Positions 34,526 through 57,685 of a DNA stretch of 64,000 nt are shown here, one piece after another. The notes below the pieces were generated by a model. That model searched no databases. It was not told where the DNA came from and was given only the letters and a program-made list of their open reading frames with translations. Made by a program: the position numbers and the translations under genes. Position 1 is the first letter of the stretch. Each line of letters begins with the position of its first letter. The DNA is from Lepidodermella squamata. Its lineage: Eukaryota; Animalia; Gastrotricha. The stretch is from contig JBLDXI010000054.1 of NCBI GenBank assembly GCA_047495785.1, positions 2,542,001-2,606,000 on the forward strand, in the 5' to 3' direction.

Positions 34526-36204
34526 TTACGAATCTTGATGTAAAAGCTGTGTTTTGAAGTCGAAAATAAGCGGCGAGTGCGTTTGAAGTAATTGGCACAT
34601 GATGGGCAGAACGCGGGGCTGGTGGCGGAAAATCGAACGAAAGACGGTAGAAACACTCGGAAAATGCTCCAACATTGCGAAAATTCTCGCCAATCGGCCA
34701 TTGGAATTCGAGTCTCGTCGGCAGAGGCGAATCATCGCAATCTCATATTGCTCCCGCAACTTGGCGACATCATCAGGTTGGTTCAATACAATGCCATCTG
34801 GGGAAATTTAAAGGCTTAAAATGAACCCGACATTCAATCTCCGACTTACCTGCATTGAGGCTTAGCAAAGCGCAGAATATGGAAAATTCGTCAATTTTGG
34901 AAATCGTCGATGCCATCATGTTGCCAGAGGTCTGATGCAGTTCTTCAAGCGTCGCAAAGTGCTGATTGATAATCGCTATCTCTTCCTCATTATCTCGGCC
35001 AGTTTCAGCGAAGCATTGTGAAATCATCAACTGCTTTAAACGAAATCGCGATTCATCGTCCACAAGCGACATAAAGTTGCCCCGCTGCTGGTCGACATCG
35101 AATTCAAGTGACAGCTGAGCTACAACAATCGGGAAAAAACTCGATGTGAAAAGGGCTATACGATCCGCAATGTCTAATTGATTAACCCCAGGCAGAGACA
35201 GGAAGAAATCGCTAACACATTTAAGGTAAATTTCATCGGTTCGGAATCGGAGTGTTATCGCGTCCTGAAAGGAAGTATCAGGCGCAAAAACGATACGAGC
35301 CCTGTTGATCGGGGCTAAATAGGCCGCCGATTCAACAGCCCGCGCTACCAGCGCGTTCGTATCAATCGGAAGATTGAATGGTGTCGAGTTGGAGATGGCC
35401 GATAGCGAAGACGAATCATTCGACATCACAGCTTGCTCGCTGTCAAATTTTTTCGACGAGCTGCTTTCCTCTGATTTTGCCTCCTTACCCCGGCGGCGGG
35501 TGACAACCGGCAGTAGGCTACCCTCTTCAGCTGCTTTTCGCAGAGCAACTTTAATCTCGACTTTTCGGTCAATAGGCGTGCTACGGGGAGCGACTTCACC
35601 CAGGGTCATGCCTGCATTTCGGCACCGTTCTAGCCGGCATTTCCGACAGTTTGAATCCGGTGGGCAGGGTCCGTTATTCCGATTCTGATTTTTGCACACA
35701 TATTGCAGCTTGAAATCGCGCCTCACAGAGCGTCGGTAGAAAATTTTGCACCCATCACAAGCTACAACGCCATAGTGGACCCCGGTGCCTTAAAAATAAT
35801 AAAATTCCACTTTGAACTGATAATTAAGAGAAATCCTCACTTGAACAGCCGCAAATCGTGCAAGGGAACTTGTTGAAATCGATACGATAGTGGCTTTTCG
35901 CAGTATCTTTGATGTCACCCATTGGCAATTCGTAAAATCTGCGCTGATCCACTACAGCTTCGCATTGTTTGAAGCGGCAGTAGCGGCAATTCTTCAAATG
36001 TTCAACATCCACTTGCTGCCCGCCCTGGAACTCTTTGCATTCGTCGATGGACGCGTTCTTGTAACGGCACCAAAATTTACGGCAAGCCTCGCATAACAGG
36101 TGATTCTTGACTGCCTCCAGGTGATCGAGCAATTGCTGCTTGCGGAAGACGATAGGCGAGCGTTTGCAAACTTGGCATTCAGCTTTGAATTCATACGGTG
36201 GCAT
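34526..36204 (-). CDS. Two-DBD nuclear receptor NR5 (3 exons)
   Basis: [21 protein letters not shown]; DBD2 GVHYGVVACDGCKIFYRRS; LBD FFLSLPGVNQLDIADRIALF; HSPLIFDF. Confidence 0.9.
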
Positions 36205-37381
36205 AGTGGGTTATTTTTTTAAAGCGATTCAATTCTACGGACAAAAAATGTGATGAACAGCCTCACATAATGTGTGTAAAATGCTTATCAAAAAATAACG
36301 TTTTTTTGAATGAAAGCCGCTTTGATGAGAACACTCAAGAGTGAGGAAAGCAAGATGTTGCGGCACGAGTTTTTCTGTAATTTTGGCCATGAACTAGGGT
36401 CAACAGTTTGAGCGACAAAAAATGTTCTGCTTTTTATTTATAGGCGGATACATAGTAATAGAAGCTACTTTAAAATTGCTGAGAGCTTAATTTGCCACCT
36501 ATTAAAAGTAGCGGAAAGGATCGATAATGCCTGAGATAACGCACAGCCCTCTACCCGAAATATTTAACGTGGTCAACTTCATATTTAGCGAAATTCCCAA
36601 CCCACGCTTCCTATCAGTACATAACCTTGTATCGAAGGTGAGCAGCATTGCAAGATAGATTTTACTGCTGAATTCCAAGGACAGTATGACACAATATGGA
36701 TAGAATTGGGCGATTAGAAAAATTAAGCCAAACAAATGACATTTCTGTTAGTGGCCTATTATTTGTCTGGGTACAAAAAGTAGGGCAAAAATTTCCGTCC
36801 ACGTTTAAGAGCCAATTGCTAACACGACACCAACCACAACTTCAAGAGTTCGTTTCTTGTCTCGTCATTTTTATAAAAAAGATTAAAGAAGCCCTTCTAA
36901 ATTTTGTTCCTATGAGTTCACCTGTTTTTTTGGCTCTAACTAAACAAGACTCCAAGAAAAAGCTAGTCTGAGAATTTATGGATGACTCAGCGAACGCTTG
37001 CTAACATGGCGTGGCTACTTTGTCTTTATGGTGATGAGATGAATTGTCCGTTGGACTAGCCGTACTAGAGCATCATAAGCATCGATGAATCGCGTGTATT
37101 TCTTTATATAAGTAATGCTGTTTTAGAAGTTGGGAAAGAAAGCTGCCACAAGGCTAGCGAAAAACTATCATTGAAATTAACTGTTAGAAAGCGAGAAAAG
37201 GCACTGAAATGCGCCAAACAGGTAACTGTGTTCAATTTTATTTTTTCAGAAAAAATAATACTGTTGCCGATCATTTACAGTTTCAAGATTACCTGTGTTT
37301 CGATATTTTTAAGAAAAAAAAATGCGCTGCGATTGTAGTATTGTAGTAAGAAGTTGGAAGTATTCGTAATCAGTTCGGCAT

Positions 37382-39887
37382 TTACCCACGAGGAGTTGAG
37401 CCGTTTAATAATCGGTCTCGTAAGTCAGAGACAAGAGGTGAGTGAGTCTCTGACAAGTGGTAAATGTAAGGTATTGAACGGTAATGTTCCGATACTAAAG
37501 CCCGAAAAATCTCTGATGACTTGGGAAATAACGCCAACATACACCTTTTTTCCTTTGCAATTTCATTATTTTTATTAAAGAAACACGCGTTTATTTTTTC
37601 ATGATCATCAGCGTATTCATTCAATTCATTTTCTTACTTTTTTCTACCGAAGAATTTACTCGATCTTCGAAGGTTCGCTGTATGCGAATACGAAACCCGA
37701 ATGGGATGAATTATATATCAAATTGAAGCTAGATATATAATCTATCCAAATATGCGATCAGATTGACAAAATTATTATGTGTTTCGCAGAAACTAAGGAG
37801 TAAGTAGAATTAACTGCAAAGATGTTATCCTTGGGTAGTTTTTAGATTTTATAGGTATAAGGCCCCTCCCTCCTCCCCAAAAATGATTAGAACAATCAGG
37901 CGAAGGTGATATCTCGAGTAGAAGCGATAGAAACTCAACAAATTTGGCTTTAGTAGCATTTTGGGCAATAGCTTACGCGGGTGCTGAGGTAGTTTTCACA
38001 AATATTGCTTTGGTTTCATCATGAAATGATTAAATTAGCGAAGACTAAGTAATAGAATAGTTCCTTAGTAGTTATCTGTTGAAAAATAAACATCATTGTA
38101 GGTAAAATCAGAAGAAACTTTCCGATCAACCAGTTGGCTAAAACGTTGAATACATTCAAGAGCAAAATGGCATCGAGTATTCTAATTTGACAGCTAGATA
38201 GATCGAATCTCTAGCTTCAATTTGATATATAATTCATCCCATTCAGGTTTCGTATTCGCATACAGCGAACCTTCGAAGATCGAGTAAATTCTTCGGTAGA
38301 AAAAAGTAAGAAAATGAATTGAATGAATACGCTGATGATCATGAAAAAATAAACGCGTTTTTCTTTAATAAAAATAATGAAATTGCAAAGGAAAAAAGGT
38401 GTAGCGTAGACCTTCGACAAATGATCATCGGCACCGGGATTGGCGCGGGCCAGTTTGAGAAGAGCTATCTCGTACCGCATTCGCAAACTCATAACGGCAT
38501 CTCTATCTTTCAGTTCCAAGCCATCTGGAAAATTCAAGATCAATAACCAATAATATAAAATTGATGAATCCGAACCTGAATTAAGGCAGCAAAGTGCGCA
38601 GAATATCGCAAACTCTTCGATTCGGGTGATTGTTGTTACCATCAAATTGCCGGCTTCAACTAGCAACCGTCTGTTTTCCGCAAACAGCTTGCGCATACGC
38701 TCGGCGACCGTCAGTCCGTCATCGCCTCGTTCAATTGATTCACATCTCCCTCCGATTAAGTTCTCGAAAATTTCTTGGGATTGCTCGTCTGCGATCGAGA
38801 ATACGACCGCTTTCTGCTCTTGTACGTTGAATGCAAGTGAATTTTGAGCAATAGCAACAGGGAAGAAGGCCTCGGCGAATAGAAGAGTTCTGTCATGCAA
38901 ATCAATCTGGTAGATACCGGGCAGGGAGAGGAAGAAATTGCTGATGTAAGTCATGTAATCTTCAAACGACTTTAATCGGACTAGGAACACTTCTTCGACA
39001 GTCGCGTCTAGAGTAAATATAATCTTAATATCACTTATCGGAGCTAGATGAGCTGCTGATGCGACGAGACGAGAGATGAGGAGATTGTAATCTTCTGGGA
39101 ATTCGACGTTTTTGCACGAATCCGTTGACGTTTGAGAATCTGAATTTTGGATTGACGGAGTTAGGACGGCATTCTTATCAGTGTTTTTTCTTGAGCGTGC
39201 GACAGCAGTTCTCAATAGCTTTCCATGAGTTGCCATGTTTTGAATCGCTGCCTTGAGGTCGACTCGGTTCACCTGATTCTTATCGAGAGTCATGCCTGCA
39301 TCAATGCACCGTTGTAGACGACACTTGCGACAACTTGAGGTGTGTGGGCAAAGTTCGGTATTGCCAGCTCGAGATTTGCAAATGTATTCCAGCTTAAAGG
39401 TACCTCTCATCGACCTTCGGAAGAAGATCTTGCAGCTGTAGCATGCCACTACACCATAATGAACACCGGAGCCTATAAAATGATATTGAGGAATACTTCA
39501 TCAAGGACTTGAAGTAAAAATCTCACTTGAAGAGCCACAGATTACGCACGGAATCTTTGAAGCATCCCCGCAACGACCATGAAGCACTGGCTTTCGAGAG
39601 GAAGCGCCTGAAGAATCCTGCCGCGGGTTTCTTCCTCGAACTGTTTCTTTGCACAGCTGCAGTCGACAGTAACGGCAGCCAAGGATGTGTTCTGATCCAA
39701 TTCCAAGGCCGTAATTAGCGCAAATATCAATAGTAGCATTTTTGTAACGGCTTAGGAATCTTTGACACGCTTCGCAGAGCAGAGAGCTATTGACAGCTGC
39801 CAGCTGCTTAGCCGTCGGTTTTTTGCTCAGGGTTACTGGTGATCGATTGCAGACTTTGCATGGTGCATCGAGTTTGAATAGTGGCAT
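37382..39887 (-). pseudogene. Two-DBD nuclear receptor NR6, last exon interrupted by a MITE
   Basis: DBD1 CEACQRF, DBD2 CYSCKIFFRRS, LBD. Removing 37542-38401 plus one TA restores LSKVYA-MLALFPKSSEIF..HSPLVSDL, collinear with paralogs. Confidence 0.85.
37542..38401. mobile_element. Non-autonomous DNA transposon (MITE), 860 bp, ~190-bp terminal inverted repeats, TA target-site duplication (Tc1/mariner-type target)
   Basis: TA|CACCTTTTTTCCTTTGCAATTTC... and ...GAAATTGCAAAGGAAAAAAGGTG|TA; near-identical arms ~37542-37733 and ~38210-38401; no transposase ORF. Confidence 0.93.
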
Positions 39888-40022
39888 TCTTATAAGTTTT
39901 CTAATAAACAGATAAAGACAGGAATAATCGAATTCAGGTTACCGGAACAGATTCATTTATCAGCGTTACATTGGCAATATTATTGCTATCTTCAGATTTA
40001 CACAGATTCAAAAAAAGATTCA

Positions 40023-41871
40023 TCACACACTGCTGGCAAACTGTTTTTTGAAGTCAAGCACGAGTGGGGAGTGATAAGCGGCTATTTCATGCATTACCGG
40101 CGTGATTGGCGAGTGATCAGTGAACTTAGCTCGGAATATAGTTGTTGCTGTCGGGTAATAATCTAACATAGCGTATATTTGCGACAAGCGACTGTCCGCA
40201 TTAGGTTTGCCCCGAACAATCCTGATCAGAGCCGTTTCGTACCGCATACGCAGATCGAGTACTACGCTTGGCTGTTTCAAGCCTGTCACATCTGTCAGCA
40301 GGAATTCGAATGAAATGAAAGAAAATTCATAAATTTATACCTGATTTGAGGCAAAGCAATGCGCAAAATAGGGCGAATTCGTCAATTTTCGATAAGCTCG
40401 TTGCCATCATGTTACCAGCTTTTAGGAAAAGCGCTTGTAGCTCCTGATGCTGCCGGCATACAAGACTCCTCTCGGGGTCATAACCTCCGCTCTCGTCAAA
40501 GTTAGCAGATGCTATCAGTTTTCTCATAAGTTCTATCGATTCACCGGGAGCTAACGACATGTAATTCATGTGCTGTGTCTCAACGTCGAATTCAAGTGAA
40601 AGCTGGGCGACTAAAACTGGGAAGACGCCCTGCGTGAAGAGAACCATTTTATCATCGAACTGAATTTCGTAGATTCCAGGCAGTGAGAGAAAAAATTCGC
40701 TCACGCATTTGAGATAAACCTCAAATGATGCCAGACGAAACCTGATCGCCTCATGGAGAGTTGTTTCCTCCGTAATGGTTATACGGACATCGCTAATAGG
40801 AGCCAGATACGCCGCTGATTTGACGACTTGTACTAACAAGCTTTCTATCTCGCTTGGAAACTCCACCAAAGGAAGAGATGTAGATGAAGCTAATGATGCA
40901 GAGCTGATTCCTTGATCAATCGAGACGTTACTAACACTAATTTGGAGATTCGAGTGGTTAGAAACTTCGAGAGATTCATTTTTCGGCGGTTCATCCGTCG
41001 GCTCTCTGTCTCTACGGCGAGTCACCGTATTAAGCAGCTTGCCATCATTGGCAGCTTTACGGATAGCTAATTTGATCTCAATTTGTTTATTGAGAGTTGC
41101 GCCACGAGGAGCGACGTCGCCTAAAGTCATTCCAGCTTCGCGACATCGCTGTAACCGACACTTCCGGCAATTCGATTTGGCAGGGCACAGCTCGCCTTTG
41201 CCTGATAGCCCTTTACAAAGGTACTCCAGTTTGAAGTTATGACGAACAGTTCGGCGAAAGAATATCTTGCATCCATCACAAGAAACGACACCATAATGAA
41301 CCCCCGAGCCTGCAATTTGATAATATATCATGTAAATCACGCGGATTGTGATATTATGGTTTTGCAATTTTCATGTTATCATAGCTAATACAACGGTAGG
41401 CCATAAAAAGACCGGCATCTGTCAGGTGAGCAAAATGGGGCCTCGGAAAAAAGCAGTATTGGGACACATTAGACCACATGCACCTATTTTTGATGGGCTC
41501 CGAGTGTTTAAATTCATAAACTTACTGGAGCATTCGCAAATGGTACATGGAACTTTAGAAAAGTCGATTCGACCGTCTCCACTGTTTTCCTCGGTATCAA
41601 TGATTTTCCTCTGATCAATAACAGCCTGGCAGTGTTGAAATCGGCAATAACGGCAAGAATTTGTATGTTCAACTTCAGGGCTCCGATCGCTTCGGTAGTG
41701 TTCACAAACATCCATGGCCGCATTTTTATATCGAGTCCAAAATTTGCGGCAAGCTTCGCAGATAATATTGTCTCTAAGAGATTCAAGCTGATCGACAGAT
41801 GGCTTCTTCCGGAATGTGATAGGCGATCTCTTACAAACTTGACATTCGGCGTCAAATATGAATGGGGCCAT
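40023..41871 (-). CDS. Two-DBD nuclear receptor NR7 (3 exons)
   Basis: [25 protein letters not shown]; [19 protein letters not shown]; LBD FFLSLPG; last exon HSPLVLDF. Confidence 0.9.
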
Positions 41872-42396
41872 CGTCCAGTATCGCAAGTATTTAATAAAAA
41901 ATATCTAAAAATGGAATGGCATTAGCATCCACTCATACATTATTGTTTATTTATCAAGAAACATGATCGTTTGCATGTGCATTGGCTCCTTTTTGCTCGA
42001 AGAAACAGCAATTAGACTAGATAAATTTGTCCAGAAACAACAAGTTCAGAATGCAGGTAAAACAAAAGACATAATGGCTGGTGCAAAACATAATCGGACA
42101 ATTACTTCATCTTAATGATATCGAGGAGAAAATCCTATAATCTCATTGTGCTACAATTAGACATTTTTCCAATTATACCGCAATTGCTCGAAAAGAAACC
42201 CAGGGTTCAGGGGTCAAACCAATTAAAAAAATAAAAACTTGAATGATTTTCCAGCTGTGAATTTTCTCTTCTTTCTTCTTCCAGATTTGTAGGGTGCGGC
42301 CTTCTGCGGGAAAAAATACGGTAATTCTATCATTTTTTGAATTAAATATTAATTTGCTTTACACATTATTCCCTGCATTATTATAAAGCATTATTA

Positions 42397-44098
42397 TCAC
42401 ACAGTCTCAACAAACTGTCGTTTGAAGTCTTGCAGAAGAGGGGAATGACATGCTGCTAACTCATTCTTCGGTGGTGAGATTCGGGCGTGATCACGCATCT
42501 TTTCTCGGAAGATAACCGAGGCTGTCGGGTAATACCCGAGCATGGAGTAAATCCGCGACAAACGTCTATCCGCGTTCGGCTTGCTCCGAACAAACCTGAT
42601 CAAAGCAGATTCGTACCGCATCCTGAGATCTAGAATTGCGCTAGGCCGCTTTAAGCCTGCAACATCTGTGAAATGATAAGGGAATCAGACAGCCGGAATA
42701 GAGAAATCCTGAAAAATACCTGATTTAAGGCAAAGCAAAGCGCAAAATAGAGCGAATTCGTTTATTTCCGATATGTTGCTTGCCATCATAGTGCCAGCTT
42801 TAAGCAAGAGCGCTTCCAACTGCTCTTGATGCCGGCGATAAAGATAACTTAACTCAGGGAAATCGCCGTAACTCTCCATTAAGGCAGAAGCTTCTACCAT
42901 TCGTTTAAACAATCCTACTGATTCACCCGGCGCTATCGACATGTAATTCATGCGTTGTGTCGCGGCGTCAAATTCTAGCGATAACTGAGCGAGTACAACC
43001 GGGAAGAAGCCCTGTGTGAATAGAGCCATTTTGTCCTCGAGCGGAATTTCGTTGATACCAGGCAGAGAAAGGAAAAAATCGCTCATGCATTTTAGATAGA
43101 TCTCAGCAGATTCCAAACGTAGCTTGAATACCTCCTGCATTGTCGTGTCCCGCGTGATGTAAATGCGGACGTTGCTGATTGGGGCCAGATATGCCGCCGA
43201 TTTAATGACGTGCGCTAAGAGGTTATCAGTCCCAATACTTGGAAATTGCATAATCTGGATGGGATTCGATGAAACAGGCGAGATTGAGCGAATTCTGTGA
43301 TCTATCGATGATGTGCTACCACTCGTTTGAGGGATCGACTGGTTTGAACCTTCGTGGGAATCGTGTTTCAGCGGTTCCGCAGTCAAGCCTTTATGCCGCC
43401 GATAGGTAACTGTGCTGAGCAACCTACCATCTTTTGCTGCCTTACGGATGGCTAATTTGATCTCGATCTTTTGTTTGAGAGGTGCGCCACGAGGAGCGAC
43501 GTCGCCTAATGTCATTCCAGCATCGCGGCATCGCTGTAACCGACACTTCCGGCAGTTAGATTCGGCAGGGCACATCTCGTCTTTGCCTGATAGCATTCTG
43601 CAGAGGTACTCCAGCTTGAACTTATGGCGAACAGATCGTCGAAAAAATATCTTGCAGCCATCACAAGAAATGACGCCGTAATGAACGCCCGAGCCTGAAA
43701 TTTGATATTAATTGCTTTCATTTTCGGATCAGACTTCTTAACTTACTAGAGCAGCCGCATATATTACAAGGAACTTTGGAAAAATCTGTTCGGCCATCGA
43801 GGTTCTGTTCGGGATCCGCGAGGGCGTTGAACTTTCTCTGATCAATAACAGCCTGGCAGTTTTGCAGACGACAATAACGGCAAGAATTTGTATGCTCGAC
43901 TTCAGGTGTCCTGTCGCTTTGGTACAGTAGACAAACATCCAGGGATGCATTTTTATAACGGGTCCAAAATTTGCGGCAAGCTTCGCAGATTAGATTGTCC
44001 CTCAGAGATTCAAGTTGATCGATAGGTGGCGTCTTCCGGAATGTAATAGGTGACCTTTTGCAAACTTGACACTCGGCGTCGAATGTGAATGGAGCCAT
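42397..44098 (-). CDS. Two-DBD nuclear receptor NR8 (3 exons)
   Basis: Same architecture; ORFs 43718..44098, 42685..43596 and 42397..42621 joined by GT-AG introns at conserved sites. Confidence 0.9.
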
Positions 44099-44366: not shown

Positions 44367-46082
44367 TCACACATTGTTAGCGAACTGTCGCTTAAAGTCT
44401 TGCACTAGTGGCGATTGCAATGCAGCTAATTCATGCTTTAATGGTGAGATTCGGGCTTGGTCACGGAGCTTAGCTCGAAAGACAGCTGTAGCGGTCGGGT
44501 AATACTCGAGCATTGAGTATATTTGCGACAAACGCCCATCCGCATTCGGTTTGCCCCGAACAATCCTGATCAGAGCAGATTCGTATCGCATCCGAAGATC
44601 AAGAATAGTACTAGGATGCTCTAAGCCTGCAACATCTGTAGAAAATAACAGAAAATTAGAATCTGAAAGAAGGAAATGAGCGAAGCTAATACCTTGTTTA
44701 AGGCAAAGCAATGCGCAAAATAGGGCAAATTCGTTTATTTCTGTTATGCTTGTTGCCATCATATTACCAGCTTGTAACAAGAGCGCTTCCAACTGCTCTT
44801 CATGCTGTATATATAGAGAATTCACTTCGAGGTTACCAGCGTCGCTCTCAGTTAGAGCAGCAGTTTGAACCAATCGTTTGTAACATTCTACTGAATCAGG
44901 TGCAATCGACATGTAATTCATGCGCTGCGTCGCAACGTCGAATTCAAGCGATAACTGGGCTATTAGAACCGGAAAAACGCCCTGTGTGAAGAGAACCATT
45001 TTGTCACCGAGCGGAAATTCGTTAATACCAGGCAAGGAGAGAAAAAAATCGCTGATGCTCTTGAGAAATATCTCGGCCGCTTCCATACGTAACTTGAATA
45101 ACTCGTGAATAGTCGTATCCTGCGAGACGTGGATACATACCTTACTGATCGGGGCCAGATATGCCGCGGATTTGATGACGTGGGCTGAGAGACTCTCTAT
45201 TTCGCTTGGAAATTGTATAACTTGGATGGAATTCGACGACACAGGTGAGATGGAGGCTATTTCTTGATCGATCGATATTGAGCTACCACTCGTTTGAGGA
45301 ATCGACTGATTTGAAACTTCGGGAGATTCGTGTTTCAGCGGTTCCGCAGTCAAGTCTTTATGCCTCCGATGGGTAACCGTATTAAGCAGCTTTCCATCAT
45401 TAGCAGCCTTACGGATAGCTAATTTGATCTCCATCTTTTTCGTCAATGGAGCCCAACGTGAAGCGACATCGCCCAAAGTCATTCCAGCATCGCGGCATCG
45501 CTGCAAACGACACTTTCGGCAATTTGATTTGGCTGGGCATAGCTCGCCTTTGCCTGACAGCCCTTTACAGAGGTAATCCAGTTTGAAGTTATGACGAACA
45601 GTTCGTCGAAAAAATATCTTGCATCCATCACAAGAAACGACGCCATAATGAACACCTGAGCCTATTATTTATTCGTTTTTAGATTTATTTTCAGTTCATA
45701 GACTCGATAACTTACTAGAGCAGCCGCAAATGTTACAAGGAACTTTGGAAAATTCGATTCGGCCATTTATGTTGGCTACGTCGCAGTTCTGTTCAGTATC
45801 CACAAGCGTACAGAACTTTCTCTGATCAATAACAGCCTGGCAGTGTTGAAAGCGGCAATAACGGCAAGAAGTTGTATGTTCGACCTCAGGTTGCTTGTCC
45901 CTTTGGTAATGCTGGCAAACATCCATGGTCGCATTTTTATAACGGGTCCAAAATTTGCGGCAAGCTTCGCAGATTATATTGCCTTTAAGAGACTCAATTT
46001 GCTCGTCAGATTGCTTCTTCCGGAATGTAATAGGTGACCTTTTGCAAACTTGACATTCGGCGTCAAATATGAATGGGGACAT
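44367..46082 (-). CDS. Two-DBD nuclear receptor NR9 (3 exons)
   Basis: Same architecture; CEACRK and CDGCKI P-boxes; QSPLVQDF C-terminus. Confidence 0.9.
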
Positions 46083-46495: not shown

Positions 46496-48202
46496 TCACA
46501 CAATGTTTGCAAACTGTCTTCTGAAGTCAAACACAAGAGGGGAATGCATTGCTGTTAATTCATTCAACATCAGGGTGATTCGGGAGTGATCACGGAGCTT
46601 ATCTCGAAACACAGCTGTTGCTGTCGGGTAATACTCAAGCATTGCGTAAATTCGTGACAAACGTCCATCCGCATTCGGCCTGCTACGAACGACCCTGATG
46701 AGAGCAGTTTCGTAGCGCAGGCGAAGATCAAACACTGCTCTTGGCTGCTTCAAGCCAGCAGCATCTGTAGAAAGTTAGCGGGAACTAGAACGCCTAATGA
46801 GAAAGAAAGTGGATACATACCTTGTTTAAGACAAAGCAGACTGCAAAATAGGGCGAATTCGTCTATCTCTGATATGCTTGTAGCCATCATGTTACCCGCT
46901 TTTAACAAGAGAGCATCTAACTGCTCTTCATGCTGCCGATAGCGAGATTTCCTCTCAGGGGTATCAACGTCGCCATCCATGATAGCAGCAGTTTCAATCA
47001 TTCTTTTGAAGTATTCTTCTGATTCACCAGGGGCAATCGACATGTAATTCGCACATTGTGTTGCCAGGTCGAATTCGAGCGATAACTGGGCAATTACAAC
47101 CGGGAAGAAGCCCTGCGTGAAAAGAACCATTTTGTCCTCTAGGTAGATTTCGTTGAATCCAGGCAGAGAAAGCAGAAAATCGCTGGCACATTTAAGATAG
47201 ATCTCAACCGAATCCATACGTAGCTTGAATGCCTCATGGAGAGTCGTATCCCGCGTAATGTGTATGCGGACTTTACTGATCGGGGCAAGTTGCGCTGCAG
47301 ATTTTCTTAATTGAGCTAAGAAGTCCTCAATCTCGCTTGCAAATGTCATAGTTTGATTAGAATTCGATGAAGCTTGTGATGCAGAGCTTATTCCGTTATC
47401 GATCGATAAGTTGCTACTACTCGTTTGATGAATCGACGGGTCAACAGTCTTCGGCGGTTTCACGGTCCCGCCTTTAGCCCTCCGGCGAGTAAGCGTATTT
47501 AGTAGTTTGCCATCATCAGCAGCTTTACGAATGGCGACTTTAATCTCAATCTTCTTCCTTAATGAAGTGCTACGAGGAGCGACGTCGCCTAATGTCATTC
47601 CAGCCTCGCGGCATCGTTTCAATCGACAATAACGGCAATTTGAGTTGGCAGGGCACAGTGCGTCTTTGCCTGATAGCCTTTTGCAGACGTATGTCAGTTT
47701 GAAGGTTTGACGAACAGTTCGCCGAAAGAATATCTTGCATCCATCGCAAGAAACGACGCCGTAGTGAACGCCCGAGCCTGCAATTTTCATTAATAATTAC
47801 TTACAATTTATGTATTAATTAGACAATAAACTTACTGGAGCATCCACAAATATTACAAGGAATTTTATGAAAGTCGATTCGGCCTTCGATTTCGACTGCT
47901 TCGCTGATCTCGTCCTTCTCCGCGACGTCATTGAAATTTCTCTGCTCAATAACAGCCTGGCAATGTTGAAAGCGGCAATAACGGCAAGAATTGGTATGTT
48001 CGACCTGGGGTTGTCTATCGCTTCGATACTCTTGACAAACATCCATGGTCGCATTTTTATAACGGTTCCAAAATTTGCGGCAAGCTTCGCAGACCATACT
48101 GCTTCTCTGACATTCAAGTTGATGAGCGGATGGCCTCTTTCTTAATATAATAGGTGATCTCTTACAAACTTGACATTCGGCGTCAAATATAAATGGAGCC
48201 AT
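46496..48202 (-). CDS. Two-DBD nuclear receptor NR10 (3 exons)
   Basis: ORFs 47819..48202, 46750..47790 and 46496..46753; same motifs. Confidence 0.9.
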
Positions 48203-48415
48203 CGATTAGTATCAAAACTTGGTATAAAAAATCTAAAAGTGAATTTCATAAGTGTATCAGCGTGAAGATCAGATAGAAAGAAAATTGGGTAAGACCAAGA
48301 CTATCGATAAAAAGTATTGATGAAAACGGCTTTGAAAACATGCTTAATTTTGTTAAAATGGAATTATTTCTTTCTGCTATAATTCCAACATTAATAATAT
48401 TTATTATATTCAATT

Positions 48416-50170
48416 CTAATGTTCACGAGAATGAACAATGTTTGCAAACTGTCTTTTGAAGTCGAGCACAAGAGGGGTATGTATTGCTGTTAATTCATTC
48501 AACACCGACGAGACCCGGGAGTGATCATGCGAGACTCGGGAGTGATCATGCAGCTTTTCTCGGAAGACAGTTGTAGCTGTCGGGTAATACTCAAGCATAG
48601 CGTAAATTCGCGACAAACGCCCATCGGCATTCGGTTTGGCACGAACGATCCTGATGAGAGCAGTTTCGTACCGCATCCGAAGATCGAACACTGCGCTTGG
48701 CTGCTTTAAGCCAGCGGCATCTTCAGAGAATTCGCGAGAACATAGAATACAAAATGAAAGAAAAACAAACTAAATACCTTGTTTAAGACAAAGCAGACTG
48801 CAAAATAGGGCGAATTCGTCTATCTCTGATATGCTTGTTGCCATCATGTTGCCAGCTTGTAACAAGAGAGCATCTAACTGCTCTTGATGCTGCCGATAAC
48901 GAGATTTCCTCACAGAGGTATCAACATCGCCATCCACGATAGCAGCAGTTTCACACATTCGTTTGAACAATACTTCCGATTCACCAGGTGCAATCGACAT
49001 GTGATTGACACGTTGTGTCGCAACGTCGAATTCCAGCGATAACTGGGCAATTATAAGCGGGAAAAAGCCCTGCGTGAAAATAATCATTTTGTCCTCGAGG
49101 GAAATTTCGTTGATTCCAGGCAGGGAAAGGATAAAATCACTGGCGCATTTAAGATAAGTCTCAAGCGAGTCCATACGTAGCTTGAATGCCTCCTGCTTAG
49201 TCGTATCCCGCGTAATGTATATCCGAACCTTGCTGATCGGGGCAAGATATGCCGCCGATTTGGTGACTTCGAATAAGAGGTTCTCTACGTCGCTTGGAAA
49301 TGTCATCATATGCATATGATTAGCTGAAGATTGTGAGACGGTTGTGACTCCTTGATTAATCGAGACGCTATTTGCACTTGTGTGAGGAATCGAATGACTA
49401 GAAACTTCGGGAGAACCCTGTTTCGGTGGTTCGACAGTCATGCCTCTGGTCCTCCGTCGGGTAACCGAATTCAGCAGCTTGCCATCATTGGCAGCTTTGC
49501 GAATGGCGACCTTGATCTCGTTCTTCTTCCTCAATGAAGTGCTACGAGGTGCAACTTCGCCTAATGTCATTCCAGCATCGCGACATCGCTGTAACCGACA
49601 CTTTCGACAATTTGATTTCGCAGGGCACAGCTTGCCTTTGCCTGATAATCCTTTGCAGACGTATGTCAGTTTGAAGGTTTGACGAACAGTTCGCCGAAAG
49701 AATATCTTACAACCATCACAAGAAACGACACCATAATGAACACCCGTGCCTGCAATATATTTCATATTGGTTCAATTTACGATGAATAGATTCGTGAACT
49801 TACTGGAGCATCCACAGATAGTACAAGGAACTTTGGAGAAGTCGATTCGGCCTTCCGTTTCCGCTGCTTCGCTGTTCCCTTCCGTATCCGCGAGGTCACT
49901 GAACTTTCTCTGGTCAATAATAGCCTGGCAGTGTTGAAAGCGACAATAACGGCAGGAATTGGTATGCTCAACTTCAGGTTGCCGATCGATTCGGTAGTAT
50001 TTACAAACATCCATAGTCGCCTTCTTATAACGGGTCCAGAATTTGCGGCAAGCTTCGCAGATCATATAGTCTCGCAGAGCCTCAAGTTGATCGACAGATG
50101 GCTTTTTCCGGAATATGATAGGTGATCTTTTGCATACTTGACACTCGGCGTTAAAAGTGAATGGTGCCAT
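48416..50170 (-). CDS. Two-DBD nuclear receptor NR11 (3 exons; 21-bp in-frame duplication near the C-terminus)
   Basis: ORFs 49772..50170, 48770..49765 and 48416..48691; HDHSRVS occurs twice. Confidence 0.9.
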
Positions 50171-50608
50171 CGATTAGTATCAATTAATTGCTGTAATAAT
50201 CTAAAAGGGAGGCTATCAATGTACAGACTGGAGAGAAATATGCACTGGACAGCCAGGCCAGCCAGGTACCCAGACGGACCTGTCTTCTGACATTTTAGGG
50301 ATGTTTTCTACCTCAGGCGCGCGTTCAGTCTACGCCTATGTGAAATGTGAAACTCTAACATTTTGAAGTCGTAAGCAGGGAACGAAATTGTAATGAAATC
50401 CTGGGCACGCCTAGCTCGCGGTTGGTGATGGCACTATCAACCCCATGGCTCCCGGCTGTTCACGAATTCATTTGCCACCGCTGAATGACTATTTAAAATC
50501 CAATTTCTCAATATCATCATAGAATTCCTTTTCAGTGAATCATTATTAAGCTGGACATATACGACGAGACCTCAACTTGCGCAGATTTATTGGAGAAATA
50601 AGTTCTTA

Positions 50609-52333
50609 CTATTTCAAAAAAACGCTGTTTGCCAGCTGCCTTCTGAAGTCGGACAAAAGAGGAGATGAGTGATAGACAGCCATTTCCATAATTATCGGCA
50701 TGATTTGGGCATAGGCTCGGATCTTCTCTCGGAAGATAAGGGTGGCTGTTGGGTAATATCCTAGCATAGTGTAAATTCTCGACAAACGATCATCTGCATT
50801 TGTTTTGCTACGAACGACCCTGATTAAAGCAGACTCGTACCGCATCCTCAGATCGAGAACTGCACTTGGCTGTTTCAAGCCTGCTACATCTGTGGAAGAA
50901 TTTCCAAGAATAAATATTTCTGGTAAAAGAAATCACAGCTTTTTCTTACCCGGTTTAAGGCAGAGCAAAGCGCAAAACAGAGCGAATTCGAAATTTTTGA
51001 TAGGCTCGTCGCCATCATATTTCCAGCTTGTAACAACAGCTCACTCAACTGCTCTTGATATCGTCGAAAAACCGAACTCCTCTCGTAGAAATCAGGATCG
51101 TTTTCGTTCAATCCAGCGGTGGCCGTCAGTCGCTTAAAAACCTCCGTTGATTCACCAGGTGCTAGTGATAGGAAATTCATGCTTTGTGTCTCAACGTCGA
51201 ATTCAAGCGAGAACTGAGCGACTAAAACGGGAAAGAAGCTTTCCGTGAACAGAACCATTTTGTCATCGAGAGGAATTTCGTTAATTCCAGGAAGGGAGAG
51301 GAAAAAGTCGCTTATGCATTTCAGATAGATCTCAGCGGATTCCTGCCGTAACCTGACTGCCTCTTCAACAGTAGTATTTTGATTCAAGTAGATGCGAACA
51401 TCGCTAATAGGAGCCAAATATGCCGCTGATTTAGTAACTTGGGCTAACAGTCCGTCTATCTCGTTTGGAAGACTCATTATTGGGAACGAGGTCGATGAAG
51501 TTAGTGAGACAGAGCTAATTTCCTGATCAATAGAGATGTTGCTAGCACTTGTATGGGGGATAGACTGATTTGAGCATTCAGGAGATTCATTCTTCTGTAA
51601 TTCAGCAGTATGGTCCTTTTTTCTTTGGCGTGTAACTGCTCCATCGCGATCAGTTGCCTTCTGGGTGATTACTTTCATCTCGTTTTTCTTGTTCGTTGAC
51701 GCGCCACGCGGGGCATTTCCGTCTAACTTCATCCCAGCATTGCGACAGCGCTGCAAGCGACACTTTCGGCAGTTTGATTTGATAGGACAGAGTTCGTTTT
51801 TGCCGGTTATCCATTTGCATAAATATTGCAGTCTATAATTCTGTCGAACCGAGCGTCTGAAGAAGACCTTGCAGCCATCGCAGGAAATCACGCCATAGTG
51901 AAAACCGGTGCCTGTTTAAAATGGTCATCAAAGATTATGAAGTCTGAGGTTTTTATCTTAACATACTGGTACAGCCACAGATAGTACAAGGAGCTTTGCC
52001 AACCTCAATACGGTCAGTAGGTTTTGCAGGTTCCCTGTTCTTGTCAGCATTTGGAAGCCCCTTGAACGTTTTTTGATCAACAACGGCCTGGCAGTGTTTG
52101 AAGCGGCAATAACGACAGGTTTTTGTATGCTCGGTTTCAGGGTGTCGATCGCAGTGGTATTCTGGGCAGCTATCGATAGTCGCATACTTGTAGCGGCACC
52201 AGAACTTACGACAAGCCTCGCAAAGTAAGCAGTTTTTCAGAGCTTCAAGTTGCTCAGACGATTGTCGCTTTCGGAAGACAATGGGCGATCTTTTACAGAC
52301 TTGACATTCAGCGTCAAATATAAATGGAGCCAT
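50609..52333 (-). pseudogene. Two-DBD nuclear receptor NR12 with an apparent 1-nt frameshift in the LBD (~50990); pseudogene or assembly error
   Basis: Reads TCA AAA ATT TC GAA TTC GCT CTG where paralogs encode SKIDEFAL; the EFALFCALLCLKP motif lies in another frame. Confidence 0.7.
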
Positions 52334-52855
52334 CACATGTTAGTTTAAAAACAGATCTAATGATCATCATGGCAAAGTATCAACGAATTTCAATGGGAGA
52401 ATTTAGAAAACGGCAGATACAGACTCGTTGATGAACTTGGGCCACAGTGTATAGATGTAGACATCTAGAACAATAGCTTCCGAGGTAGAGTAAAAAAGGC
52501 ACCCTTTAATGCGTATAAAGCCTAATCAGCTCGACTCAGCTTTCAACAATGGATGGAAGGGCAGAGTCAAGCCCACCTATTGTTATCATTAGATGTAATT
52601 TCTATTTCTGTATTTCTGCTCAGTAAAGCAATTGAAGCTAGTTGAATCATCAGGGCAAATTTAACGTAAATGCAAGTTTCTTTGAGATGCATTAAATATT
52701 TTGTTAATCTCACAGGAATAACTACCGAAATTATCGTGCAATGTGCAGTACCGAGCATCTCAATTCGAGCTCTTAAAGTAGAAGAGAACAGGTGACGAAT
52801 TCTAATTGTTCAATTAAATTCAATATGAAGCGTGATCATTGTTGTCGCAAACTAA

Positions 52856-54934
52856 TTAGGAAACACTGCTTGCGAGCTGCTTTTTGAAGTCGAGCACAAG
52901 TGGCGAGTGAGATGCAGTCAATTCATTCATTACCGGCATGATTCGAGTATGGTCACGGAACATCGCCCGGAAGATTGCCGAAGCTGTCGGGTAATAGCCG
53001 AGCATGGCATATATTTGCGACAGGCGGTTATCCGCATTTGGCTTGCCTCGAACGACTCTAATGAGAGCATTTTCATATCGCATCCGCAGATCGAGAACTG
53101 CGCTTGGCTGCTTCAAGCCTGCCACATCTGTATAACAAATTGTCCTGAAATCAAGACTGCAAATTGGAAAGGAAGCTCAGCCTACGAACCCCTAATCCTC
53201 TAACTACCCGACCACAGCCTAGTGTCTAGGCTAAAACTCTGTTGATGAAAAGATCGGGAAAAAGCGTGATATCTAACTAGCTCAATCGCTTTAGTCTTTT
53301 TTGCTTTTAGAGTATTTTTCCAATTATTTATTCTATTAAGAAGAGGATACTGGCGATAGGGACATGAAGCTTAGAGAAAATTGCGTACCTGGTTTAAGAC
53401 AAAGCAATGCGCAGAAGAGACCGAATTCGTCGATTTTTGATAGACTTGTCGCCATCATGTTACCAGCTCGTAAAAACAGCGCCTTCAACTCCTCTTGACG
53501 CACCCAATTCACAGACATCTGCTCGTGAAAATCAGGATTGTTCTCATCCAATCCACCAGAGGCCACAATCCGTTTGAATAACTCTGCTGATATATCAGTT
53601 GCAAACGACATGAAATTTATGCGCTGCGTCTTAACATCGAATTCAAGCGAGAACTGGGCAACTAAAACTGGGAAGACTCCCTGCGTGAAAAGAGCCATTT
53701 TGTCTTCCAGCGGGATACTGTTGATTCCAGGCAAGGAAAGGAAAAAGTCGCTAACGCATTTGAGATAAATCTCAGCTGACTCTAGACGTAATCTAATGGC
53801 TTCCTCAAGTGTTGTATGGTCGGTCATGTAGATGCGAACTTCACTGATCGGAGCCAAATATGCTGCTGATTTGGTGACTTCGACTAGCAGATGTTCCATC
53901 TCCATTGGTAGTCCCAATAGTGTGAGAGAGGTCGATGAAGCTGGAGAAACAGAGCTCATTCCCTGATCAATCGAGACGCTGCTAGCAGTTGTTTGAGGAA
54001 TCGACTGATTTGAGCCTTCAAGAGATTCGTGTTGCTGTGGTTCAGCAGTGCGGTCCTTATTCCTACGGAGGGTAAGCGCGTTCAGCAACTTGCCGTCATT
54101 AGCAGCTTTCCGGATTGCCACTTTAGTCTTGATCTTCTTCCTGAGAGGTGCGCCACGAGGTGCAACATCACCCAAGGTCATCCCAGCATCGTGGCATCGC
54201 TGCAAACGGCATTTACGGCAATTTGATTTGGCGGGGCACAGCTCGTCTTTGCCAGACAATCGTTTGCAAAGGTACTGCAGTTTGAAATTCTGCCGAACGG
54301 AACGTCGGAAGAATATTTTGCAACCATCACAAGAAATCACTTCGTAATGAACACCAGAACCTGCAAGAAATATTCACAGGCATCTATATTGAATATGACA
54401 GTGTATAATAAGGTTTACTCTTCAGTTAATCCCTCAATTTTAACAACTCTTTGTTTCCTAGACTTTATTTAAACTGTCGATAATGATCGTATTAAACCCC
54501 AAGCTTGATTCAATTATTACTATTCCAAGTAGCTGAATCTTCCTTGTTAATAAAATAATCAACTCACTGGAACAGCCACAGATAGCACACGGAACTTTAG
54601 AAAAGTTGATCCGGCCAGGAGTTGTTGCAGCTTCGCGGGTTTCATCACCATCGGGAAACTCGTGAAGCTTTCTTTGTTCAACTACCGCCTGACAGCGTTG
54701 GAAGCGACAATAGCGGCAAGATTTAGCATGTTCGGTTTCAGGCTGCCTATCGATGTGGCAGTCTGGACAGCTACCAATGGTTGTGTTCTTGTATCGGCAC
54801 CAAAATTTACGGCAAGCTTCGCAAAGTAAGCAGTTACGCAAAGCCTCTAGCTGCTCGACCGACTGTCGTTTTCGGAAGACGATGGGCGATCGTTTACAGA
54901 CTTGACATTCGGCGTCAAATTTGAATGTAAACAT
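52856..54934 (-). CDS. Two-DBD nuclear receptor NR13 (3 exons)
   Basis: ORFs 54458..54934, 53336..54340 and 52856..53125; DBD2 has HYEVISCDGCKI (G>E relative to paralogs). Confidence 0.9.
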
Positions 54935-55299
54935 TAATTATTAGCAACAATGCGTTTAAAAATGATCTAAAATAATAGAATAAATTAATTTTGCATGCAA
55001 GCGAATATATAGAATACTTGAAAAAACTCGAGCATGAAGAACATTTGGTTTGGAATGCAGAATTTCCTCATACCTCAGTTACTCAACGGAAAACATAGGA
55101 ATAAAAATTATATTCGCCGAAAGAAGAAAGCAAAGCATGGTACCAGAGTCGATCACGGCTAAAGGCGAGGAAAAGCTATGGCGAAAAATATGGAAGCGAA
55201 ACTTCCGCCACTTGTTGCTTTGATTTGCGTGCCAGGAAATTTCCCATGAATATGCCAATATCCCCGCAGATTTATTCGAAAAATTGAGTTCTTCCTATT

Positions 55300-57685
55300 T
55301 TAGAAAACACTATTCACTAGCTGTCTTTTGAAGTCGAGCACAAGTGGCGAGTGACATGCTGTTATTTCATTCATAATTGGCATGATTCTAGCATGATCAC
55401 GGAACATTGCTCGGAAGATTGCCGAAGCTGTAGGATAGTAGTCGAGCATAGCATAAATCCGCGACAAACGGTAATCGGCATTTGGTTTGCCCCGAGCAAC
55501 CCTGATCAGAGCATTTTCGTATCGCATCCGCAGTTCAAGAACTGTGCCCGGCTGCTTCAAGCCGGCCACATCTATAAAATTAAAGCAGAAATGAAAATTA
55601 TTCATTGAAGAAATCCAGGTATTTCGGCCTAATGGACGACAAAGAATAAAAAACCCCTCCAATATTCGAAACGCAACTGCGAGATGGCCAGTCGATATCT
55701 TTCAGCCCATCCCACCCAATCACAACAGATCATTACTTATCGGAGTAAACGAGTGTTTTTGAACAGCCAGGAAAAGAGCTCGCAAATGGACAGAGTACCA
55801 AGAAAAATCCCAAGCCATATGGAGCCTCTTAAAACATCTCTTATTTTGTGAATTTATACCTGGTTTAAGACACAGCAAAGCGCAGAACAGAGCGAATTCG
55901 TCGATTTTAGATAAGCTTGTTGCCATCATGTTGCCAGCTTGCAGCAACAGCTCACCCAACTGCTCTTGATATTGTCGAAAAACAGCCGTCCTCTCGTAGA
56001 AATCAGGATCATTCTCATTCAACCCAGCAGTTGCCATCAGTTGTTTAAAACGTTCTGTTGATTCGCCCGGGGCCAGCGACATGTAATTAATACGTTGTTC
56101 GTTAACGTCGAATTCAAGCGATATTTGGGCGACTAACACAGGGAAGACGCCCGGAGTGAATAGAGCAATTTTGTCCTCGGGTGGGATTTCGTTGATTCCA
56201 GGCAGGGAAAGAAAAAACTCGCTAACGCATTTGAGATAAATCTCAACAGATTCCATACGTAGCCTGATCGCTTCATCGTAGGACGTATCGCTTGTCATGT
56301 ATATGCAGATGTCACTGATCGGCGCTAAGTATGCCGCTGATTTTGTGACTTGGACTAACAGACTCTCCATCTCCATTGGAAGTCTTAATAATGGGAGAGA
56401 GGTCGATGAAGCAGGTGATAAACAGCTCATCCCATGGTCGATCGAGACGTTACTAGCACTTGTTTGAGGAGCGGACTGGATTGAAACTTCAGGAGATTCG
56501 CGTGTCTCTGGTTCAGCAGTACGGTCCTTATTCCTACGGCGGGTGACCGAGTTAAGCAGCCTACCATCATTAGCAGCCTTCCGAATCGCAACTTTAATTT
56601 CCAGCTTTTTCTTCATGGGAGCGCCGCGAGGAGGAGCGATATCGCCCAAAGTCATTCCTGCTTCCTGACAACGCTTCAATCGACACTTACGGCAATTTGA
56701 TTTGGCAGGGCAAAGCTCGTCTTTGCCTGATAGCCCTTTGCAAATGTATTGAAGTTTGAAATTCTGCCGAACGGAGCGGCGGAAGAAGATTTTGCATCCA
56801 TCACAAGAAACGACACCGTAATGAGCACCAGAACCTATAGTTGACATTACAATTCCAAATAAATTTGATCGCCATTTATAAAAAATTGTTATAATTAAGT
56901 GGGGCTTCTCAAAATGGGGGTCGCAGGGTCTTTTCACTTGGGTCGCCGAGTGAGCTGGGGGTCACGGGGTCCGCCTGATGATTTTCATATAGCTAAAAAT
57001 TACATAAATTTGGTTCATTTTTGGCCTCTTTGGACAAAAAGCTGGCTGAAGAGCTCAAGTCCATGGAGAGTTCAAGAAATTATAGGAGAAACTGAGTAAA
57101 TTGGGTGATATTTTCTAGCTTGGACCTCGGACGTAGAATTTCGGAATGTTTAGCATCTTTTCCTATACTGAAAATCGATAAAAAATGGAAAAATCCCCCT
57201 GGGGTTACCAGCTTGCAAAGAACTTATGAATTTGGGGTCGCCAAGGTGTTGGGAAGCCCTGTGATATAGTTTCGATTTTTGATCAACCCTCTCGCACAAA
57301 GAATATCTCGAAACTCACTTGAACAGCCACAGATAGTACAAGGCACTTTGGAAAAGTCGATTCGGCCAGGAGTATTCGCCGCCTCGCTATTCTCGTCAGT
57401 AAAAGGAAGCTCATGGAACTTTCTCTGCTCAACAACAGCCTGACAGTGTTGAAAGCGACAATAACGGCAAGATTTAGCATGTTCGGTTTCAGGCTGCCTA
57501 TGGCTTTGGTAGTCCGGACAGCTATCAATGGTTGTGTTCTTGTAACGGCACCAAAATTTACGGCAAGCTTCGCAGAGTAAGCAATTTCGCAAAGCTTCTA
57601 GGTGCTCAGCGGATTGCTGCTTTCGCAATAGGATGGGTGATCGCTTACAAACTTGACATTGAGCGTCAAATTTGAAAGGAGCCAT
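55300..57685 (-). CDS. Two-DBD nuclear receptor NR14 (3 exons; first intron enlarged by a repeat)
   Basis: MAPFKFDAQCQVC..; [19 protein letters not shown]; LBD; HSPLVLDF. Confidence 0.9.
56900..57261. mobile_element. Probable hAT-type MITE in intron 1 of NR14
   Basis: Imperfect terminal inverted repeats TGGGGCTTCTCAA ... TTGGGAAGCCCTG, subterminal GGGGTC(G/A)C repeats, degenerate 8-bp flanks (taattaag/tgatatag). The intron is much longer than in most paralogs. Confidence 0.5.

Follow-up and report, generated by a model that had tools for sequence, protein, structure and literature searches.

Few features of animal transcription factors are as conserved as the eight cysteines of the nuclear-receptor DBD. 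In the gene array described here, from the gastrotrich Lepidodermella squamata, one zinc-binding cysteine is missing from a whole group of paralogs. Six-frame translation of the window, by which we mean the entire 64-kb stretch of DNA that was analyzed, identified 16 two-DBD nuclear receptor genes on the minus strand (NR1-NR16). In ten of them, NR5-NR14, the second finger of the first DBD (DBD1) is probably a Cys3His site made by relocation of its second ligand, as suggested by residue conservation and a predicted structure.

Gene array and its expression

All 16 genes share the same plan, in which a DBD1 exon with the pattern C-x2-C...CEACR-KF...finger 2...IPCxICGCSS is followed by a canonical second DBD (DBD2) plus an LBD (ligand-binding domain). 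Two tandem DBDs and one LBD per gene constitute the two-DBD architecture of the published NR7 receptors (not to be confused with gene NR7 of this array). Homology searches were run exon by exon for each gene. DBD2 matches the Pfam zf-C4 profile (PF00105) with 51-66 bits (E 1e-13 to 1e-18), clearly above the gathering cut-off of 21.1 bits. The LBD profile has the Rev-erb LBDs as its top match (E 5e-5), and every weaker match is also a nuclear-receptor LBD; the Pfam Hormone_recep profile matches the LBD with an E-value of 0.04 only. At least 39 genes of this two-DBD family are located on the one contig.

The products of the ten genes with the modified finger are two-DBD nuclear receptors that are expressed and under selective constraint. 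Transcription of NR8, NR9 and NR10 is supported by RNA contigs. The NR8 transcript is correctly spliced (introns 43694-43745 and 42666-42719), its DBD1 exon being joined by splicing to the DBD2+LBD exon, and NR9 has an intron at 44636-44692. At least nine of the ten genes have an undamaged exon 3, and dN/dS of DBD1 is 0.17, which corresponds to purifying selection. The intact exons, the spliced RNA contigs and this dN/dS value exclude that NR5-NR14 are pseudogenes or an assembly artefact; as a check on the latter, an independent DNA run contains 95% of the sequence words.

Two states of the second finger of DBD1

Finger 2 of DBD1 occurs in two states, which translation confirmed in the genes named by the preliminary description. 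The first is C-x-C-x8..18-C-x2-C (CxC type), found in the six genes used as comparators: NR1 (7902-7976), with the ancestral C-x-C-x18-C-x2-C and the reading CTCGG..ECRYC; NR2 (11359-11415; CSC..CRSC); NR3 (23061-23117; CTC..CRKC); NR4 (28557-28622; CVC..CRPC); NR15 (60019-60060; C-x-C-x8-C-x2-C; CLCSKSAAKKCRFC); and NR16 (63211-63255; C-x-C-x9-C-x2-C; CKC..CRFC). The second state (EH type) is C-x12-H-x3-C-x2-C, where the loop ends in ..EH-x3-C-RY-C. It was found in NR5 (35977-36039, His codon 35998-36000), NR7 (41644-41706, His codon 41665-41667; identical to the reading quoted earlier), NR8 (43871-43933, His codon 43892-43894), NR9 (45855-45917, His codon 45876-45878), NR10 (47975-48037, His codon 47996-47998), NR11 (49943-50005, His codon 49964-49966), NR12 (52106-52168, His codon 52127-52129), NR13 (54707-54769, His codon 54728-54730) and NR14 (57458-57520, His codon 57479-57481), as well as in NR6 (39666-39722, His codon 39687-39689), which has x10 in place of x12. 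The gene order confirms that both states adjoin in one array.

In NR5-NR14 the Cys at +2 after the first ligand is missing, and various residues (H, L, E, Y, Q, D or N) occupy its old position, whereas a Glu-His pair is invariant, with the His at -4 from the third ligand. The distance between ligands 1 and 3 is similar in both types (14-16 residues). The Cys-to-His switch proposed earlier stands as far as the lost Cys and the invariant His are concerned, but it is not a substitution at one position, since the putative ligand is shifted by 11 residues. The ancestral state in the family of this array is itself non-canonical, being C-x-C and not C-x5-C.

The remainder of DBD1 is also divergent. 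Finger 1 is C-x2-C-x24-C-x2-C in the EH type and C-x2-C-x19..25-C-x2-C across the array, and neither Cys4 module of zf-C4 (C-x2-C-x13-C-x2-C and C-x5-C-x9-C-x2-C) is present in DBD1, whereas DBD2 is near canonical. When DBD1 of NR5-NR14 was compared with PF00105, two genes scored above the 21.1-bit cut-off (22.4 and 22.5), five below it (14.9-20.9) and three gave no match. The P-box of DBD1 is EACRK (EACQR in NR6). For DBD2, most of NR5-NR14 have DGCKI; NR12 has DGCKV, NR6 has YSCKI, and the comparators have EGCK[GIT] or NGCKL.

Origin and conservation of the EH state

In a tree built on DBD2+LBD, with DBD1 left out, the EH genes group as a single clade (94/91; recovered in 96% of bootstrap trees) that lies within the CxC genes, in agreement with the single origin in a clade ancestor that had been suggested. 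The same clade includes an 11th EH-type copy outside the window (C54:2514181), which is frameshifted, is probably a pseudogene, and shares an extra loop Cys with NR12. The description of this clade as young was not borne out: dS is ~1 among NR7-NR14, and NR6 and NR7 are only 43-47% identical. The tree length of the clade is ~3.8 substitutions per site (branch sum, DBD2+LBD).

The EH pattern goes beyond chance: over this divergence, 23 of the 90 columns are invariant among the 11 EH-type DBD1s. E65 and H66 (NR7 DBD1 numbering) are the only invariant residues in the 16 columns between ligands 1 and 3. C53, C70, C73, the four finger-1 cysteines and C78 are likewise invariant, with both TGC and TGT in use, while the Glu codon varies between GAA and GAG and the His codon is CAT, or CAC in NR6. 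Recent gene conversion as the source of the E-H invariance is excluded by these synonymous differences, by those in the flanking codons and by dS of ~1. The loop evolves faster than the core of the EH-type DBD1 (dN/dS of 0.46 vs 0.15).

The CxC cysteine is also absent from a second clade (C54:2648190 and C54:2650735), where the sole conserved loop residue is again a His, at C-x3-H. This is a second loss of the Cys, further along the array and independent of the EH clade; the association between Cys loss and a conserved His is thereby based on two independent events only. Other nuclear-receptor arrays of the same genome have C-x-H..CxxC (C-K-H, C-N-H) or H-x2-C..CxxC.

Several searches for relatives were performed. 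The 433-aa DBD2+LBD reading frame of NR9, used as query in a word-based protein search, gave 7138 candidates, none at E <= 1e-5. A profile of a 27-sequence DBD1 alignment, compared exhaustively with 1.84 billion representatives, gave 29 matches at E <= 1e-3; among 11 of these 29, the sole recognized relative was P0019, a 160-aa Logan fragment of CxC type, and none was of EH type. The EH-clade alignment yielded 422 pattern matches in metagenome contigs, none of them confirmed. As these searches found no orthologs from other species, the E-H conservation is known within one genome only.

A candidate relocated ligand

We propose that the ancestral module C-x-C-x12/13-C-x2-C would have lost its second ligand, the Cys at +2, in the clade ancestor, and that its role would have passed to a His at -4 from ligand 3, to give the ligand order C53, H66, C70, C73. 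His66 is the most plausible fourth ligand of the EH-type finger because the three cysteines are invariant, because it is one of two invariant loop residues, and because the independent loss of the same Cys kept a His. With the loop length approximately unchanged and the His near ligand 3, zinc would pin the C-terminal rather than the N-terminal end of the loop. The result would be a fast-evolving loop of 10-12 residues between ligands 1 and 2, where canonical receptors hold the D-box.

The AlphaFold model of NR7 DBD1 (41593-41862; pLDDT 82) has helices at 36-45 and 71-89 and a nuclear-receptor DBD fold, which is typically built of two perpendicular helices that each follow a zinc module. The 50 best-listed PDB matches of the model are all nuclear-receptor DBDs, with middling Z-scores of 5.1-5.8 over 64-75 aligned residues. 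A short helix at 64-69, absent from the model of a CxC outgroup, carries the E-H pair one turn ahead of C70, although pLDDT over 61-70 is only 73. As residues 64-69 are helical in the model, H66 and C70 are placed at i/i+4, as is standard where two residues of a helix bind the same zinc.

Conservation of the E-H pair can also be explained in another way, which we consider rather unlikely: the three cysteines would hold zinc together with water, Glu65 or another group, and His66, with Glu65, would owe its conservation to some other function. It might touch the DNA backbone or a base, take part in an interface between DBD1 and DBD2 or in a dimer, or cap the short helix. E65 is as invariant as H66, so the pair could indeed serve another role. 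Canonical DBDs have basic residues immediately ahead of the third Cys, which make contact with DNA phosphates, and the CxC paralogs retain R/K there; therefore, this stretch is functionally loaded. An acidic Glu, however, would be unusual as a residue that contacts phosphate, and transcription-factor fingers rarely, to our knowledge, have structural zinc sites with three ligands, which counts against this explanation. The second, independent loss also kept one conserved His at another position, which is easier to reconcile with replacement of the ligand than with a contact tied to one position.

The extra loop cysteines introduce a further complication, as they could restore a Cys4 site in NR12, C54:2514181 and NR13, leaving the His as a remnant there and as a ligand in the other copies only. 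We regard such a mixed clade as very unlikely. The Cys of NR12 is at +5 (CPEYHC; C-x4-C-x7-H-x3-C-x2-C) and that of NR13 at +3 (CPDC; C-x2-C-x9-H-x3-C-x2-C). Both are typical knuckle spacings, each a single base change away from the Tyr or Ser codons of sister genes (AGC to TGC in NR12; TAC to TGC in NR13, where the sisters have TAC or TAT), and the His may be redundant in NR12 and the outside copy, and in NR13. Yet the E-H pair is intact in all three genes, the outside copy is frameshifted, and three cysteines among ~120 variable loop residues are about what is expected by chance.

That finger 2 of the EH clade is a zinc-free, degenerate structural element, in a DBD1 that as a whole may have lost DNA binding, seems highly improbable to us. 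DBD1 is indeed strongly remodelled, its finger-1 loop having 24 residues compared with 13 in canonical receptors, and its zf-C4 scores are around or under the cut-off, three of the ten genes having no match; against this stand the invariance of C53, C70 and C73 with synonymous variation at dS of ~1, the low dN/dS of DBD1 and the retained fold of the AlphaFold model. The zinc site thus appears to be retained in the EH clade. C78, the equivalent of which sits five residues down helix 3 in nuclear-receptor DBD structures, is unlikely to be the replacement ligand, being invariant in 27 of 27 aligned family members, including every CxC type.

Possible implications of the proposed ligand relocation

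What the ligand change would mean for function we infer from the proposed site. The relocation of the ligand to His66 may be more than a neutral change: it could re-create a long D-box-like loop between ligands 1 and 2, the diversification of which among the tandem paralogs would set dimer-partner or half-site-spacing specificity, and the module might in addition respond to pH or redox state through its Glu-His-zinc arrangement. We consider this quite unlikely, but if it were true, paralogs of a single array could acquire new transcription-factor specificities through the rewiring of a zinc site. In the array, an ancestral Cys4 finger with an unusual C-x-C knuckle adjoins a derived, probably Cys3His finger in intact, expressed genes, and with both states side by side it is a natural test set for the evolution of structural zinc sites. 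It is equally a test set for what DBD1, which is poorly understood, does in two-DBD receptors.

Comparison with known zinc fingers and receptors

In C2HC/CCHC fingers with H-x3-C on a helix, such as the NEMO zinc finger or the HCCC sites of TAZ domains, one zinc is bound by a His and a Cys that are separated by a helical turn of four residues, as proposed here for H66 and C70. These fingers have unrelated folds, and we know of none with a following C-x2-C that provides the third ligand from the next helix. Nor do we know of a nuclear-receptor survey that covers Gastrotricha.

Published two-DBD receptors share with the array the DBD1-DBD2-LBD order, a DBD1 P-box of the EAC(K/R)K type, and an NR1-like DBD2 and LBD (Wu & LoVerde 2007, PMC1810520; Wu & LoVerde 2023, PMC10497141). 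Their fingers are canonical, both DBDs having C-x2-C-x13-C-x2-C and C-x5-C-x9-C-x2-C, and their P-box is EACKK (PMC1810520, PMC10497141), whereas the array has x19..25 in finger 1, the P-box EACRK, and C-x-C or C..H in finger 2. The published P-box modules EACKK-EGCKG (group A) and LPCKS-EGCKK (group B) do not occur in the array genes. The string EACRK was not found in the literature searched, and EACRKF and CEACRKF are absent from the supplements of the 2023 catalogue. That survey recorded at most seven two-DBD genes per species (PMC10497141), compared with at least 39 on one contig here, and the two-DBD repertoire of L. squamata is by far the largest seen so far.

The closest parallel for the histidine is HR96b (vitellogenic factor 1) of parasitic flatworms, where the second Cys of finger 2 has given way to His (CHC2), as deduced from sequence (Wu & LoVerde 2021, PMC8363021). 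In both cases, ligand 2 of finger 2 of a nuclear-receptor DBD would be a His that is conserved throughout a clade. The His of HR96b, however, sits exactly where the D-box Cys was lost, whereas that of NR5-NR14 is 10-12 residues past ligand 1, with three residues between it and ligand 3. HR96b is also a single-DBD receptor of NR1J type, and the finger considered here belongs to DBD1 of a two-DBD receptor. Wu & LoVerde (2023, PMC10497141) report that they found the CHC2 motif in no 2DBD-NR, and we found no described nuclear receptor with the H-x3-C-x2-C spacing. The other His-bearing fingers of the same genome, which belong to single-DBD receptors, have likewise lost a Cys and have a His nearby, but it adjoins ligand 1 (at +2, or -3 before it), while the His of the EH genes is at the opposite loop end, in receptors with two DBDs. 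The finger with the probably relocated His is a variation on a well-known family, with similar putative Cys3His fingers in flatworms and elsewhere in the same genome.

Architecture and class of the receptor genes

The 121.2-Mb assembly (G000, 151 contigs) carries, within the window G000:C54:2542001-2606000, 16 minus-strand genes (NR1-NR16), each composed of an exon with a divergent first DNA-binding domain (DBD1), a ~50-nt GT..AG intron, and a long exon that encodes a near-canonical DBD2 plus the ligand-binding domain (LBD). The start of DBD2 (..IPCxICGCSS) is already encoded at the 3' end of the DBD1 exon. Gene models were analysed one exon at a time. The Pfam zf-C4 model matches DBD2 with 51-66 bits; for the DBD1s of NR5-NR14 its match is weak (14.9-22.5 bits in seven genes, none in three) and spans positions 17-19 to 65-66 of the model. 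The downstream region, searched as a profile, matched Rev-erb LBDs (E 5e-5), with weaker matches likewise all to nuclear-receptor LBDs, and Pfam's LBD model barely detected this region (E 0.04). Based on the zf-C4 match in DBD2, the LBD profile matches and the weak DBD1 match, these genes belong to the two-DBD nuclear receptors (NR7 in the classification of Wu & LoVerde, PMC10497141), and their first DBD has been extensively remodelled. In DBD1, finger 1 has the spacing C-x2-C-x24-C-x2-C versus the canonical x13, and the P-box is EACRK.

Some variation in gene structure was observed among the paralogues. DBD1 is split just after CEACR (CE[AS]CR) in NR1-3 (window 8084, 11576 and 23230) and in distal genes, and is unsplit there in NR4-16; the DBD1-DBD2 intron is absent from NR1 (window 7557-7619). 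The DBD2 P-box of NR6 is CYSCK instead of C[DE]GCK (window 39443), and DBD2 finger 1 of NR13 has HYE versus HYG in all other genes (window 54331).

Finger-2 states and extent of the family

Finger 2, read in all 16 DBD1s, is C-x-C-x8..18-C-x2-C (CxC-type) in NR1-4, NR15 and NR16, whereas in NR5-NR14 the +2 Cys is missing and the motif is C-x12-H-x3-C-x2-C (x10 in NR6) with an invariant Glu-His (EH-type). The preliminary description was right on this arrangement and its coordinates, but missed an additional Cys at +5 in NR12 (C-x4-C) and at +3 in NR13 (C-x2-C).

DBD1 of NR7, searched against the six-frame translation of the genome, had 36 matches, of which 31 lie on contig C54, and the family count took in 150 kb of flanking sequence. 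This contig holds at least 39 DBD1 finger-2 exons (26 CxC-type, 11 EH-type and two C-x3-H); in the 2023 survey (PMC10497141), no species has more than seven two-DBD receptors. The array extends far past the window, over G000:C54:2010145-2658594 (window 7143-63432 plus loci L031-L045). All of its DBD1s are remodelled: the finger-1 loop is long, the P-box is of the EAC(R/K) type and the 26 CxC-type exons have the C-x-C knuckle. Given this share of CxC-type exons (26 of 39), the ancestral state of the family is C-x-C rather than canonical C-x5-C.

The EH-type copies comprise NR5-14 and a plus-strand copy at C54:2514181 (L042:2181-2600), 28 kb before the window and on the opposite strand to its genes, which is sister to NR12 and combines C-x4-C with E-H. 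This copy has a frameshift inside DBD2 (~L042:2800-2850), with finger 1 in two frames (GSGLHYGVI / SCDGCKVFF), and is probably a pseudogene, the alternative being an assembly base error.

A maximum-likelihood tree was built from DBD2 and LBD only (35 genes, 308 columns), excluding finger 2 of DBD1; four genes with no paired DBD2 exon (three at 2.01-2.03 Mb and g2642444) were left out. In this tree the 11 EH genes are monophyletic (94/91; recovered in 96% of bootstrap trees), and their clade lies inside the CxC genes. The two C-x3-H genes, both on the minus strand, form a separate clade (97/72) inside another CxC group; they are C-x3-H-x6-C-x2-C at C54:2648190-2648477 (L033:2190-2477) and C-x3-H-x4-C-x2-C at C54:2650735-2651022 (L033:4735-5022), lack the CxC Cys, and have the His as their sole conserved loop residue. 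There were thus two losses of the second Cys, and one conserved loop His accompanies each.

The CxC gene g2629985 (minus strand, C54:2629985-2631658; L032:5287-5475) combines C-N-C and ..EEH-x4-C in a single loop, possibly as the remnant of an intermediate that had the new His alongside the old Cys. The His may thus have arisen before the Cys loss, but the DBD2+LBD tree did not place this gene as sister of the EH clade. The gene also lacks the DBD1-DBD2 intron.

Constraint, age and expression

Across the 11 EH-type DBD1s, 23 of 90 columns are invariant, namely all seven remaining ligand Cys, C78, parts of the recognition helix, E65, H66, R71, Y72 and R74 (NR7 numbering). Between ligands 1 and 3 only E65 and H66 are invariant, and the residue at the old Cys position (+2) now varies freely (H, L, H, E, Y, E, Q, D, D, E, N). 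Codons of E65 and H66 vary synonymously, with GAA or GAG for Glu and CAT, but CAC in NR6, for His. Among NR7-NR14 Nei-Gojobori dS is ~1 (saturated), and dN/dS is 0.17 for DBD1 overall, 0.15 for the core and 0.46 for the finger-2 loop. The clade had been described as young; this dS shows that it is old, and recent duplication or gene conversion does not account for the E-H invariance.

The 2015 sequencing run behaves as RNA; the 2024 run holds 95% of words, unspliced. In contigs of the 2015 run, 43694-43745 and 42666-42719 are missing, with CT..AC ends (GT..AG when read on the minus strand), so that the NR8 exons are joined in the predicted way; NR9 (intron 44636-44692) and NR10 are covered too. 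No differing letters were reported at the E-H codons of NR8 and NR9. At least nine of the ten genes have an intact copy of the conserved third exon, which encodes the LBD's C-terminal part.

Predicted structure and the zinc site

The AlphaFold2 model of NR7 DBD1, built with a 27-paralogue alignment, has a mean pLDDT of 82 and helices at 23-32, 36-45, 64-69 and 71-89; its top Foldseek and VIA-align matches are nuclear-receptor DBDs only (TM ~0.5; Z 5.1-5.8 over 64-75 residues). The short helix immediately ahead of C70 contains E65 and H66, and H66 is one turn (i, i+4) from C70, as is usual when two ligands of one zinc sit on a helix. The less confident model of the closest CxC outgroup (L032:2720-2992, minus strand; pLDDT 69) has no helix ahead of its C-x2-C.

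The EH feature is well supported at the sequence and evolutionary levels. The simplest reading is a Cys3His site with H66 as the predicted fourth ligand, which we consider plausible and somewhat favored, because the Cys triad (C53, C70, C73) is invariant, H66 and E65 are the only invariant loop residues capable of binding metal, and the independent Cys loss also kept a single conserved His. One rival reading is that water or Glu completes a Cys3 site and the His has another role. Another rival is that NR12 and NR13 reverted to Cys4: their extra Cys codons are one base from those of sister genes (TGC vs AGC in NR12, TGC vs TAC/TAT in NR13), and both genes retain Glu-His. A third rival, a zinc-free finger-2 module, is opposed by the three invariant Cys, which speak for retention of the zinc site.

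The Cys-to-His switch proposed initially holds as to the missing Cys and the invariant Glu-His, although ligand relocation would describe the change better than a point switch. The distance between ligands 1 and 3 is alike in the nearest CxC genes (14-15 residues) and in EH genes (14-16), but ligand 2, formerly at +2 from ligand 1, would now stand at -4 from ligand 3. A one-residue knuckle with a long second loop would thereby give way to an extended first loop in the D-box position and a tight H-x3-C-x2-C cluster.

Comparison with known receptors

For a genome of 121 Mb the nuclear-receptor repertoire is very large: of 438 first-look candidates, at least 150 are scored zf-C4 matches, many of them in tandem arrays (e.g., C25, C26, C105, C15 and C49). 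The published L. squamata genome paper makes no mention of nuclear receptors. The P-box string EACRK was not found in the published literature searched, and EACRKF / CEACRKF are absent from the 2023 supplementary alignments (PMC10497141). Three public-library proteins (P0002, P0003 and P0006; 746-878 aa) have four or five complete tandem zf-C4 DBDs (4-5 stretches; Pfam E 1e-66 to 1e-83) and then a region that, by eye, resembles an LBD; receptors with more than two DBDs are not described in the 2DBD-NR literature searched.

A 'CHC2' second finger, in which His replaces the second D-box Cys, is known from HR96b of parasitic flatworms (Wu & LoVerde, PMC8363021). The same authors later stated that no 2DBD-NR has this motif and that both DBDs of most 2DBD-NRs are canonically spaced (PMC10497141). 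Other nuclear-receptor arrays of the same genome have C-x-H or H-x2-C second fingers (read at loci L055, L061, L063 and L030), and thus His substitution in finger 2 is recurrent in L. squamata. What sets the EH genes apart from these other His fingers is where the His is placed and that it belongs to DBD1 of two-DBD receptors.
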